Of a DNA stretch of 64,000 bases, positions 32,688-49,204 are shown piece by piece (position 1 is the first letter of the stretch; each line of letters begins with the position of its first letter). The stretch spans positions 438,448,287 through 438,512,286 of the forward strand of contig NC_058133.1 in the NCBI RefSeq assembly GCF_016433145.1, in the 5' to 3' direction. The notes beneath the pieces are model-generated. The model did not search any database. It was not told the origin of the DNA and worked only from the letters and a program-made list of their open reading frames with translations. The position numbers and the translations under genes were made by a program. Origin of the DNA: Gracilinanus agilis. Taxonomy: Eukaryota.

Positions 32688-46273
<13,586 letters not shown>

Positions 46274-46604
46274 GCCACCAGCCTGGCCCTTTGTCCTAGT
46301 TTCCCTTTTCCCTTGCACCTTTTTCCATAGTCCCTGATTCTTCTGTATTCTTCTGTTCCTACTTTCTCCATCCTGTCCCTGAGGCAATATCAACCCTCAG
46401 AATTGCCCCTGCCTCAGCCATTAGGGTGGCATAGCTGTAAGGGACTTGTGGAAGTAAAGGATCCAGTTAGCGACCACTTACCTAAGAGTGAACCAATCTC
46501 TCCCTGAAGATAATGACCCTCCTACTTTGTGTCTAGGCAGTATGCCAGAGACTGGCTAGGAGTGGCTCTGGTGGGAAACAAGCAGCTCTGAGGCTGAGTA
46601 ATGG

Positions 46605-46902
46605 ACCCCCCTGTCCACAAGGAAAATTGATGCCCAACATGCCCTCCTTGTCCACCATGACTAACACCACCATGAAGTTAATGACAAAGAGATTGACATG
46701 GATATGACAGCACCTGAGACAGAAAGAGCTGCGATTGCCATCCAGGGCAGGTTTTGAGACTATCAGAAAAAAAAAAAAAGTTCCGCCTAAGCTGCCAGCC
46801 TTGTCATTTGCCTGTTACCACCTCCCCCTGCACAGATCCTGATCCCATGTATCTTGGTTTCTCTCTTCTACTAACCTGTGAGGCACAGCTGTAAACCCTT
46901 GT
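46605..46902 (+). pseudogene. Degenerate tandem duplicate of the PCP4L1 terminal IQ exon (pseudo-exon in the 3' UTR)
   Basis: 46689-46790 reads [32 protein letters not shown], with 55/66 nt identical to 46169-46234. The acceptor region and 3' UTR blocks also align. In-frame stops at 46662 and 46755. Confidence 0.85.
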
Positions 46903-47672
46903 AATATCCTCTGTCCCCATTACCATAGTAGCAAAGCTCTAAGGAGCCTGAGAAAGCCAATCTCTCCTGTGTGAATAGTACTCAGTAGCAAGGTCCCATG
47001 TCAGTGACTAGGGGCAGGGCAGGAGGTGATAGACCCTTGGGCAATTAAAGCAGAGCAAAGGCTTCAGAGAGTGTTTGGGGGCAGTTTCTATCACATGCTA
47101 AACTTAGAGGTTAGGTAACATTACCTTACAGATTTCTATGTCCCTCTTCCCAACTTCCTCTTATGAGCTGAGCCACAGCAAGTACTAGAGCCTTCCCTTT
47201 CCACATCCCCTTGTCAGATTAAACAGTTTATCACATTAGTGCATGCTGGGTAGATTAGAATTTCAGGGAAGGAAGATGGGGAGTAGTAAAGGCAAAAAAA
47301 GTTCTCTCATTTCTCCCTATACCTCCCACCCAACCACCATTCTCTAAAGACAGGGAAATGAGAACGTTAGAGAAGCTCAAAGATGAGGGGGAAGGCAGAA
47401 AGTGGAGGAATGGGATTAGGATAGATTAAGAGTGAAAGGATATTGAGAGGCAGGAATGAAAGAGCAGTGAGGGGTTTCTGAAGCCTTGAGATAATGCCCA
47501 GTTGAGTGCCCTCTATGAAAAATATCTTTGGGCTCCAACAAGCCTCCCCATCCATATGCCCTGCCTTTGGTCTCCTGAACCCAGTGTCTTCACCTTTCCT
47601 CCAATCTCCATCTGTCCCACTGGGAGGCAGGGAAGAAATAACTGATCCTCCTCCCAAGGTTTTAGCATGTTT

Positions 47673-47678
47673 AATAAA
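47673..47678 (+). terminator. PCP4L1: PCP4L1 polyadenylation signal
   Basis: AATAAA followed by a GT/T-rich downstream element (gagtgagtttgtttctgtctacttttt), ~1.4 kb after the stop. Confidence 0.7.
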
Positions 47679-49204
47679 AACCTCGAGTGAGTTTGTTTCT
47701 GTCTACTTTTTTGGGGGGGGAGCAGAGTTGTGGGATAAGGAAGTTGGGCTAAAATGGCCACACGGTGGCCTTGGATAGAGTGGTGTGGTCTCCTTGGAAT
47801 CCAGGTGAGTGGTTTTCCATTGTTCCAGGCCCCAAATAGGGACTCTTGACAGGAAAAATTGCTTCATTAGTTTTCAATAAGACCCTAATTCTCCCATAAA
47901 TCTCTCCCACCTCTACCTTCCCACCCACCAACCTTGCTCTCACCTTGATTAACCTCTTCAAGTTTCTTTGTCTGCTAGTGCCACCTCCCCCGCCAGGCAC
48001 CTGCACTGCTCTCCCATCACCCTTCCTCCTCCTCTGATCTTAGAAGTTAGTGCATACTCCTCTCTTGAGAACAAACCTCAAATGAATTGTCCCTCTCTTC
48101 CTTCTTTGTTATTTCAAATTGGGGTGGGGGTAATGACATTACCAGGGGGTCAGAAACAAGGGGAAATCATACTGTAAATGAGTTCTGTATATAACAAAAT
48201 GATAATAACCTTCAGTTCAGCTTACAGTTGCTGATTAATGATACATGGCATGAGAAATCCAAAGCCCTCTTTAGGGAACTCTGGTTCAGGGAAGCCAGGC
48301 TCCGAGAGCAGAATTACACATTCCATTCTCTTGATTGAGTGGCTCTGGCTACTGTGACTAACCTGAGTGTTAGAGACTGGCTTCTTTCCCCATACCAAGC
48401 CTGGTCCTCCAGGATCGAGTCCAATCAGCATCTTTTTAGGGGTCCCCAGACACTAGGAAAGCTCTACATCCCATCATGTAGAAATTGTAGGGATACGTGG
48501 CAAATAGGAATAGAGCGAGAGAGTTCCTATGGTCCATACCCAGAGGTTTATCTATCTGGCACTGTTCAGGGTAACAAGTCAGGATTCAGGACCACCAAAG
48601 GACAGGTACTGGCCATGGAAGAAAAGGAAGTATCAGTTCTAAGGAGGATGTGGCCAGTGGGAGCTCTGCTAGCTCCCTACGTGCCTTTGTAAAGTATTTG
48701 TTGTTGGCCCTGATATTCTTCTTGAGGATACAAGTGTGGCATCTGGAACCATATTTGATACTTAGAAGACACAGTCATAAACTAGTGCCATTTCCTCCTG
48801 GCATTTCAAATAGAAGAGGAAAAGGCATGTCCTTGCCATTTCTGACTCCATTTCTATTTGCATTATGGTCATCTCAGTACCCACTTTGATTATTCCCTAT
48901 CCTGTGTGAAGTATGGTAAAGCCTAATTGCTAGCACTTTAGGCAGAAGATAGACATTAATTGTTGATGTGACTTGTACTTCCTTTTAGGGATTTGAAGTG
49001 AAGATAGTATCCCTGTTTTGTTTTGTGTTTGTTTTTTTTGTCTCTGTGGTGTCTCCCGTTTCTGGGCCAGTTGATAGGAGATGGAAGTTAGTTATTGCAA
49101 TGCTTTTTATTTGGGCACTGAAGTAAAAGTGATGCTCCCTGTTTCCTGGAGGTTTCCTTTCACAGATACTATCGCTTGGAGGATGCTTCCTTGTGTGTGT
49201 GTGT

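Follow-up and report, generated by a model that had tools for sequence, protein, structure and literature searches.

Duplication of exons in tandem is a known route to alternatively used exons and to new isoforms, and the homologous exons that it yields have reportedly come to serve as alternatives to one another. In exitron (exonic intron) splicing, an intron is removed from within an exon. The brain gene PCP4L1 has features of both in marsupials. It was analysed in a window of 64,000 nucleotides (nt) from Gracilinanus agilis (NCBI RefSeq assembly GCF_016433145.1, contig NC_058133.1, forward-strand positions 438,448,287 to 438,512,286; unless another locus is named, positions below are counted from the first letter of the window). 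Here the 3' untranslated region (UTR) of PCP4L1 holds a second copy of the terminal coding exon, exon 3, together with its IQ motif. The copy in G. agilis is a dead pseudo-exon within the mature 3' UTR. Its orthologues in seven assemblies of Australidelphian marsupials have an open frame, and they probably function as the last exon of an alternative isoform. The locus is a new, lineage-specific case of tandem exon duplication in a two-member IQ-peptide family, with an exitron-like splice and repeated loss.

The two PCP4L1 exons resemble other tandemly duplicated exons in that they are adjacent, diverged and of the same phase, each with its own acceptor, and in that the one annotated isoform of the copy type, from the tammar wallaby, carries a single IQ module. 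They differ from them in three respects: the duplicate is a terminal exon with a stop codon and UTR, the alternative splice starts inside the first copy and not from an upstream exon, and the system has decayed independently in two marsupial clades, including that of the window. As in an exitron, the alternative intron lies wholly inside an otherwise single terminal exon and starts in coding sequence. Unlike an exitron, it includes the stop codon together with some of the UTR, has a duplicated acceptor at its 3' end, and swaps the C-terminus with no internal deletion.

A repeat search of the window returned a direct repeat of 92 nt (46167-46258 against 46687-46778) with 79% identity and a spacing of 520. 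Smith-Waterman alignment of 45800-46560 with 46561-47300 scored 103 over 46167-46318 and 46687-46833, compared with 20.9 +/- 2.3 (maximum 30) for 200 shuffled controls, which bears out a preliminary description of the window in which a copy of exon 3 had been placed in the PCP4L1 3' UTR. With MAFFT the homology could be followed, more weakly but without interruption, from a point about 50 nt ahead of the acceptor to one about 230 nt beyond the stop. The two units so delimited nearly abut, and the homology includes the polypyrimidine tract and acceptor, so that each unit has an acceptor of its own. The AA at 46619-46620 in the copy corresponds to the AG at 46135-46136 ahead of exon 3, and the stop of exon 3 has its counterpart in the terminal TAA at 46788-46790, a correspondence that had also been proposed. 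The match counts in the preliminary description were reproduced for the acceptor region (19 of 24, the strings differing at five) and for the IQ core (55 of 66 nt and 17 of 22 amino acids, with 11 and five differences). Adjacent homologous exons, each with an acceptor and derived by genomic duplication, are thus present, and they are syntenic in 11 marsupial sequences.

In the window the copy shows the marks of a pseudo-exon: its splice site is lost, it holds in-frame stops, its substitutions follow a neutral pattern, and its orthologue is intact elsewhere. The lesions listed earlier (AA at 46619-46620, TAA at 46662 and TGA at 46755) are each present, both stops lying in the frame of the AAA at 46623. 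An AG one base over (46620-46621) would be out of frame. With TGA at the Arg codon, the remnant motif reads IQGRF-stop-DYQKK and does not match the IQ consensus ([ILV]QxxxRxxxx[RK], PF00612). An RNA contig of the same species (run X19, 1799 nt, 3 differences) carries exon 1, joins 45472 to 46137 across a GT..AG intron, and is unbroken from 46135 to 47663. Because it runs unspliced across the copy, the copy belongs to the mature 3' UTR, upstream of the AATAAA at 47673, as had been supposed. RNA contigs of two didelphid relatives, coded A and B, likewise pass from exon 2 to exon 3 and leave the copy unspliced, out to about 47690. No splicing into the copy was seen in the RNA contigs of G. agilis and these two relatives, contigs being prone to drop rare forms. 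In the window itself, nothing functional is expected of the copy beyond possible UTR effects.

Loci of other marsupials were fetched through exact look-up of the PCP4L1 protein, which gave 10 assemblies besides the window: Monodelphis, Trichosurus, wombat, a koala-like assembly, GCA_028583685.1, Notamacropus, three dasyurid assemblies and Sminthopsis. All ten have the copy, 310-420 nt past the exon 3 stop. It is open in seven Australidelphian assemblies (Trichosurus, GCA_028583685.1, Notamacropus eugenii, GCA_048593225.1, GCA_902635505.1, GCA_016432865.2 and Sminthopsis), four of which are dasyurid; GCA_028583685.1 is probably the glider Petaurus, GCA_902635505.1 Sarcophilus and GCA_016432865.2 Antechinus. 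The open copies have a CAG/GG acceptor (the slash marks the splice junction) and a frame that reads ..IDM(T/A)APETE(K/R)AA..IQDRFRSYQKKKK.. to a stop at the ancestral position. An intact AG with an open frame in any species had been named beforehand as support for a live isoform, and each of the seven has both. The copy is broken in wombat and in the koala-like assembly, where a common 2-nt insertion shifts the frame ahead of the IQ motif. The CAG acceptor is kept in 10 of the 11 marsupial sequences, and dasyurids keep it despite a 38-nt deletion upstream.

Outside marsupials, the 6 kb downstream of PCP4L1 were searched with tblastn in echidna, narwhal and green turtle, and no second IQ-like exon was found. 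Smith-Waterman scores in these outgroups (28-34) were at shuffle level, against 106-116 in possum and devil. A search of other lineages, as the preliminary description had proposed, thus recovered the copy in all marsupials fetched and in none of the three outgroups. On this small outgroup sample, the duplication appears to predate crown marsupials and to be specific to them. A minor point concerns wombat (L004:20416-20523), in which the +2 frameshift is followed by +4 in the A-run; the ancestral stop is regained there and the IQ motif is read out of frame.

When the tammar copy exon was compared with 5.8 billion clustered proteins, a single match was obtained: XP_072500116.1, a RefSeq protein of 99 amino acids annotated as PCP4L1 isoform X1 of Notamacropus eugenii. 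Joining exon 1, exon 2, the first 21 nt of exon 3 and the copy exon of the tammar locus (L007) reproduces it exactly. The alternative intron is 461 nt long with GT..AG ends, from G/GTGAGG to CAG/ (junction L007 19577/20039). The last coding exon of this isoform is the orthologue of the pseudo-exon in the window, and its acceptor is homologous to 46619-20/46621; the window orthologue differs in having lost the AG and in carrying two stops. The protein is an automatic single-species model without a publication, and its tail after KKKK is frameshifted relative to other marsupials. In the literature searched, nothing mentioned PCP4L1 together with marsupials, and this one automatic model was the only trace of the exon. 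Among 163 vertebrate PCP4L1 proteins retrieved with canonical queries none has copy-type residues, the tammar model being the sole annotated protein with the C-terminus of the copy. The exon is accordingly missing from all marsupial gene models but one.

Each of the 11 marsupial sequences has the identical motif at the internal exon 3 donor that the tammar isoform uses. This donor is formed by GGT, a Gly codon in KKGEEEE; the corresponding codon is GCC in echidna and GCT in narwhal. The window retains the donor intact (46157/46158), but the partner acceptor is dead. Both the exon 2 donor and the internal donor are of phase 1, and both acceptors are followed by 2 nt and then by codons; with phases thus compatible, either exon is open in the seven Australidelphian assemblies, the frame in the window not being open. 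Donor and acceptor lie at non-homologous offsets of the repeat units and bound a canonical intron, which argues against an artefact of repeat-induced alignment or template switching. Transcripts that use the second exon are represented by the tammar RefSeq model only, the contigs of G. agilis and the two didelphid relatives showing the canonical splice. The preliminary description had taken the copy for the remnant of an alternative-terminal-exon system. Open copies in seven assemblies and the annotated tammar isoform speak for that idea, but it needs amendment, since the annotated splice leaves from the internal donor and not from exon 2.

Two observations on these sequences may be added. The GGT Gly codon is specific to marsupials, Ala being found in echidna, narwhal and other tetrapod proteins, and it creates a near-consensus 5' splice site. 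The A-run in tammar (L007:20150-20253) is 2 nt shorter than in the six other Australidelphian assemblies, and the isoform has 32 extra hydrophobic residues.

Conservation among the open copies is strongest at the IQ motif. The 27 nt encoding IQDRFRSYQ require one parsimony change over the seven species, or 0.037 per site, where the canonical coding sequence has 0.036 and the UTR 0.26-0.41; only 1.5% of 27-nt windows in the UTR are as conserved as this IQ-basic segment. The Australidelphian IQDRFRSYQKK keeps all four consensus positions (I, Q, Arg+5 and Lys+10). Against the Pfam IQ model the Australidelphian exons gave E values of 0.017-0.11, which are sub-threshold (below the gathering score), and at E values up to 1 neither the canonical protein nor the piece from the window gave a match.

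These data have to be weighed against the possibility that the copy is an inert duplicate that was never an exon, its open frame and IQ-like stretch being due to slow evolution of the UTR or to an RNA element and the tammar isoform to low-level splicing noise picked up by an annotation pipeline. Several points favour this view or otherwise count against the account of a live, marsupial-specific exon. The whole UTR is well conserved (pairwise identity of 0.8-0.95 among Australidelphians), and other islands within it are conserved equally well. The IQ-basic segment is invariant at synonymous sites too, and it is conserved in wombat despite the broken frame; constraint at the RNA level, in a generally conserved 3' UTR, could be an alternative cause of this invariance. 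Over the three quarters of the exon that hold the linker and the acidic part, the ratio of nonsynonymous to synonymous differences (pN/pS) is close to 1 (0.7-2.0), so that selection at the amino-acid level is not demonstrable in that part. Taken alone, the lack of stops has no statistical significance (P of about 0.4, by our own estimate, for the observed count of changes). One isoform of the copy type is found among the 5.8 billion clustered proteins, and neither the other annotated marsupials nor the RNA-derived open reading frames of Logan carry the exon. The frameshifted hydrophobic tail in tammar could be a real change in that lineage or a homopolymer error. Finally, the absence of the copy outside marsupials was checked in one eutherian, one monotreme and one reptile only.

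Other observations speak against an inert copy. Indel lengths divisible by three account for four of six events in the frame of the copy and for 10 of 69 in the flanking UTR (binomial p of about 0.005). In dasyurids the CAG acceptor has survived the deletion upstream of it. The consensus positions of the IQ motif (I, Q, R6 and K11) match exactly the 27 nt with the strongest conservation, and these 27 nt differ at seven positions between didelphids and Australidelphians, didelphids being exactly the group in which the frame is broken. The position of the stop is kept in the open copies, with a swap of TAA to TGA in dasyurids, and the length of the A-run is identical in six of the seven open copies and varies in three of the four broken ones. 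The annotated intron ends at the ancestral acceptor, has canonical GT..AG ends and joins non-homologous positions of the repeat. An inert duplicate is thus considered unlikely, though it is the most serious of the alternatives. Coding constraint appears only in the frame and the IQ motif, and on this comparative evidence a live alternative isoform in Australidelphians seems moderately probable. We infer that Australidelphians make the isoform, that it has a function in them, and that the didelphid ancestor also once used it.

An A-rich run (46763-46775) near the end of the coding-like part of the copy could suggest a retrocopy, or the reinsertion of part of a PCP4L1 mRNA into the 3' UTR of the gene. 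This run, however, is homologous to the Lys-rich codons of exon 3. The homology also extends upstream into intron-derived sequence and downstream into UTR past the stop, no exon 1 or exon 2 sequence precedes or is joined to the copy, and the position is tandem. A processed retrocopy was rejected on these grounds as very improbable, and the original interpretation as a genomic duplication holds, with homology beyond the exon on both sides and a layout that is syntenic in every marsupial fetched. An assembly artefact (a collapsed or expanded repeat), which the preliminary description had set beforehand as an outcome that would overturn it, is rejected as having a negligible chance: nothing was found in its favour, the units are 70-80% alike and too diverged for mis-assembly, an RNA contig and a genomic contig of G. 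agilis span both units (the latter covers 45031-47452 with 4 differences and has the same AA and TAA, the sole caveat being that its run may share the sample of the assembly), and ten other marsupial assemblies have the same layout.

Three didelphid lineages can be compared for the decay of the exon: the window, Monodelphis, and the relatives A and B, which form a third lineage differing from the fetched Monodelphis locus; the letters stated rest on the Monodelphis sequence. At 46619-46620 the window has AA, and Monodelphis and A/B have AG; the codon at 46662 is TAA in the window and CAA in the others. By contrast, all three have TGA at 46755, that of A/B being deduced from a matching piece that has no difference across 46745-46779 and whose 18 mismatches are all accounted for. 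Since the TGA is common to the didelphid lineages, it predates their split, and the other lesions are lineage-specific. Monodelphis has its own damage in a +1 T frameshift, and A/B carry a 1-nt gap somewhere within 46619-46779. An origin of the TGA from CGA had been thought plausible; Australidelphian copies have CGG, and a paralogous G. agilis contig has CGA.

Between the window and Monodelphis the copy diverges by 8% and exon 3 by 2%. A hand count of the differences in the copy gave 2 synonymous changes and about 9 replacements, and the ratio of nonsynonymous to synonymous substitution (dN/dS) is about 1 within didelphids. This pattern indicates that in didelphids the copy drifts neutrally, without constraint. 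In opossums, including the laboratory model Monodelphis, the exon should be marked as a 3' UTR pseudo-exon. Two structural differences were noted in passing. Didelphid copies have an in-frame His-rich insertion at 46636-46677, containing ..HHHE..; it amounts to 42 nt when compared with Australidelphian copies and to 36 nt against exon 3. In A/B a lineage-specific deletion shortly before the acceptor region of the copy has left a single T in place of the 40 nt at 46531-46570.

The paralogous contig comes from a DNA run of G. agilis (X22). It is 2125 nt long and has single-copy depth (24, compared with 26-29 for the locus). It matches exon 2 (45419-45470), the copy (46710-46797, copy-type) and UTR patches (46969-47010 ... 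47514-47680) that are collinear, with the same spacing, to 47680; there are no matches on canonical exon 3 or the proximal UTR. At 46750 it has A (AAG, not AGG) and at 46755 C (CGA, not TGA). As a lead, the contig may be an old processed copy of a transcript lacking 46158-46620, i.e. one produced by the alternative splice before the TGA arose.

The protein segment encoded by the copy follows canonical PCP4L1 and PCP4 (PEP-19), both small proteins with an acidic block and an IQ motif, in the order of its elements: an acidic stretch, ..APETE.AA.., IQxxxRxxxx[KR] and a Lys-rich tail. It derives from exon 3 of PCP4L1, with 79% nucleotide identity in the core, and departs from the canonical protein in a Glu-rich element that is shortened and variable. 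The Arg variant of ETE(K/R) and the QKKK tail are features that we take to be PEP-19-like. A passage in PMC5424795, citing Morgan & Morgan 2012, states that full-length canonical Pcp4l1 does not bind calmodulin. According to the same passage, binding is blocked by a nine-residue Glu-rich element adjoining the IQ motif and is restored by deletion of this element, by a swap of the PEP-19 region or by mutation of Ile36. In the alternative exon the Glu-rich element is cut to 2-3 Glu, compared with EEEE, and the equivalent of Ile36 is Ser or Ala in several species. The reduced element and the changed Ile36 equivalent lead us to suggest, tentatively, that the alternative isoform might bind calmodulin. 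With a weakened auto-inhibitory element and an intact IQ motif, it could be a PEP-19-like form that was kept in dasyurids, possums and macropods and lost independently in American opossums and in koala and wombat, and of whose mRNA the paralogous contig may be a retrocopy; this proposal is possible but rather doubtful. With the IQ consensus kept and the Glu-rich element degraded, the exon amounts to a natural experiment on the auto-inhibition that has been published for the IQ motif of Pcp4l1.

The history that we favour, and hold as a whole to be quite likely, comprises a duplication, use of the copy as an alternative exon, two losses and the pseudo-exon of the window. Its observed components are the duplication and where it occurs, the condition of the copy in each genome, the copy in the mRNA, and the tammar isoform as annotated. 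On the marsupial stem, a tandem duplication of about 470 bp would have copied the last coding exon, its acceptor and the proximal 3' UTR into the 3' UTR. The Gly codon GGT, in place of the Ala of monotremes and eutherians, would have given a phase-1 donor G/GTGAGG 21 nt into exon 3. Splicing from this donor to the CAG of the copy would take out an intron of about 460 nt, made up of the canonical acidic and IQ segment, the stop and about 350 nt of UTR, and the replacement C-terminus would consist of a variable linker and a second IQ motif, IQDRFRSYQKKKK. The alternative product would then have residues 1-28 of the canonical protein, followed by the fast-evolving linker, a short acidic stretch and the IQ motif. 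The phase-1 donor of exon 2 could in principle serve for the copy as well.

The exon is still open and ready for splicing in Dasyuromorphia and non-vombatiform Diprotodontia. It would have died at least twice: in didelphids, where the codon of the invariant Arg in the IQ motif went from CGN to TGA and further damage came in the separate lineages, and in koala and wombat, by the shared 2-nt insertion. In the window, the end state is the AG to AA change, the TAA and the TGA, with the copy transcribed only within the 3' UTR and drifting neutrally. If this account is right, the locus provides a datable birth and death of an isoform, in which one exon duplication and one donor-creating substitution supplied a tiny neuronal gene of the calmodulin pathway with another C-terminus that was then lost at least twice.

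Features of the PCP4L1 locus in the window, with the basis for each
Feature	Position	Strand	Basis and remarks
Canonical exon 1, coding part (ATGAGTGAG, then gt)	32688..32696	+	pattern search
Exon 2, 55 nt, phase 1 end, donor GT 45473-74	45418..45472	+	tblastn, sequence, spliced RNA contig
Duplication unit 1: about 50 nt of intron 2, exon 3 and proximal 3' UTR	46085..46505	+	alignments; boundaries approximate
Canonical terminal coding exon 3: acidic block, IQ motif, stop TGA 46271-73	46137..46273	+	translation
Internal 5' splice site AGG/GTGAGG within exon 3	46155..46163	+	exon part ends at G46157, intron would start at GT 46158-59
Duplication unit 2: tandem copy within the 3' UTR	46565..46967	+	alignments; same place in 10 other marsupial assemblies
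Dead acceptor: polypyrimidine tract and CAA	46606..46620	+	ancestral CAG kept in every other marsupial examined
Pseudo-exon: remnant frame, GG and AAA (46623) to ancestral stop TAA 46788-90	46621..46790	+	translation, multi-species alignment
In-frame TAA, specific to the lineage of the window	46662..46664	+	CAA in two other didelphid lineages
Remnant second IQ-basic motif IQGRF-stop-DYQ	46740..46766	+	Australidelphian homologue IQDRFRSYQ, nearly invariant
In-frame TGA at the Arg of IQxxxR	46755..46757	+	common to the three didelphid lineages seen
Poly(A) signal AATAAA of PCP4L1 mRNA	47673..47678	+	sequence; RNA contigs end at 47663-47690; segment highly conserved

From the start at 32688 to the exon 3 stop, the gene covers 13,586 nt. 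Exon 1 was placed with the help of RNA contig X19, the unaligned end of which, preceding 45416, reads ...GCCATGAGTG. The translation of exon 3 is 100% identical to the marsupial PCP4L1 C-terminus, and the spliced product of 66 amino acids equals PCP4L1 of Monodelphis domestica and of Gracilinanus agilis. The locus in the Monodelphis genome and the window share only 89% identity. Some 3.2 kb beyond the canonical start, at 35872-35913, there is an alternative first coding exon, again followed by gt, whose translation agrees with the N-terminus of G. agilis PCP4L1 isoform X1 (77 amino acids). Intron 1 contains interspersed repeats at 44160-44840 and 45000-45340, where the DNA run of the species reaches a depth of 600-870x, compared with about 27x in unique sequence. 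Within the 3' UTR, three islands (47084-47108, 47254-47314 and 47655-47689) are conserved like coding sequence, with 0-1 change per 27 nt in the seven Australidelphians. The island at 47655-47689 is the region of the poly(A) signal, and the other two may be regulatory sites.

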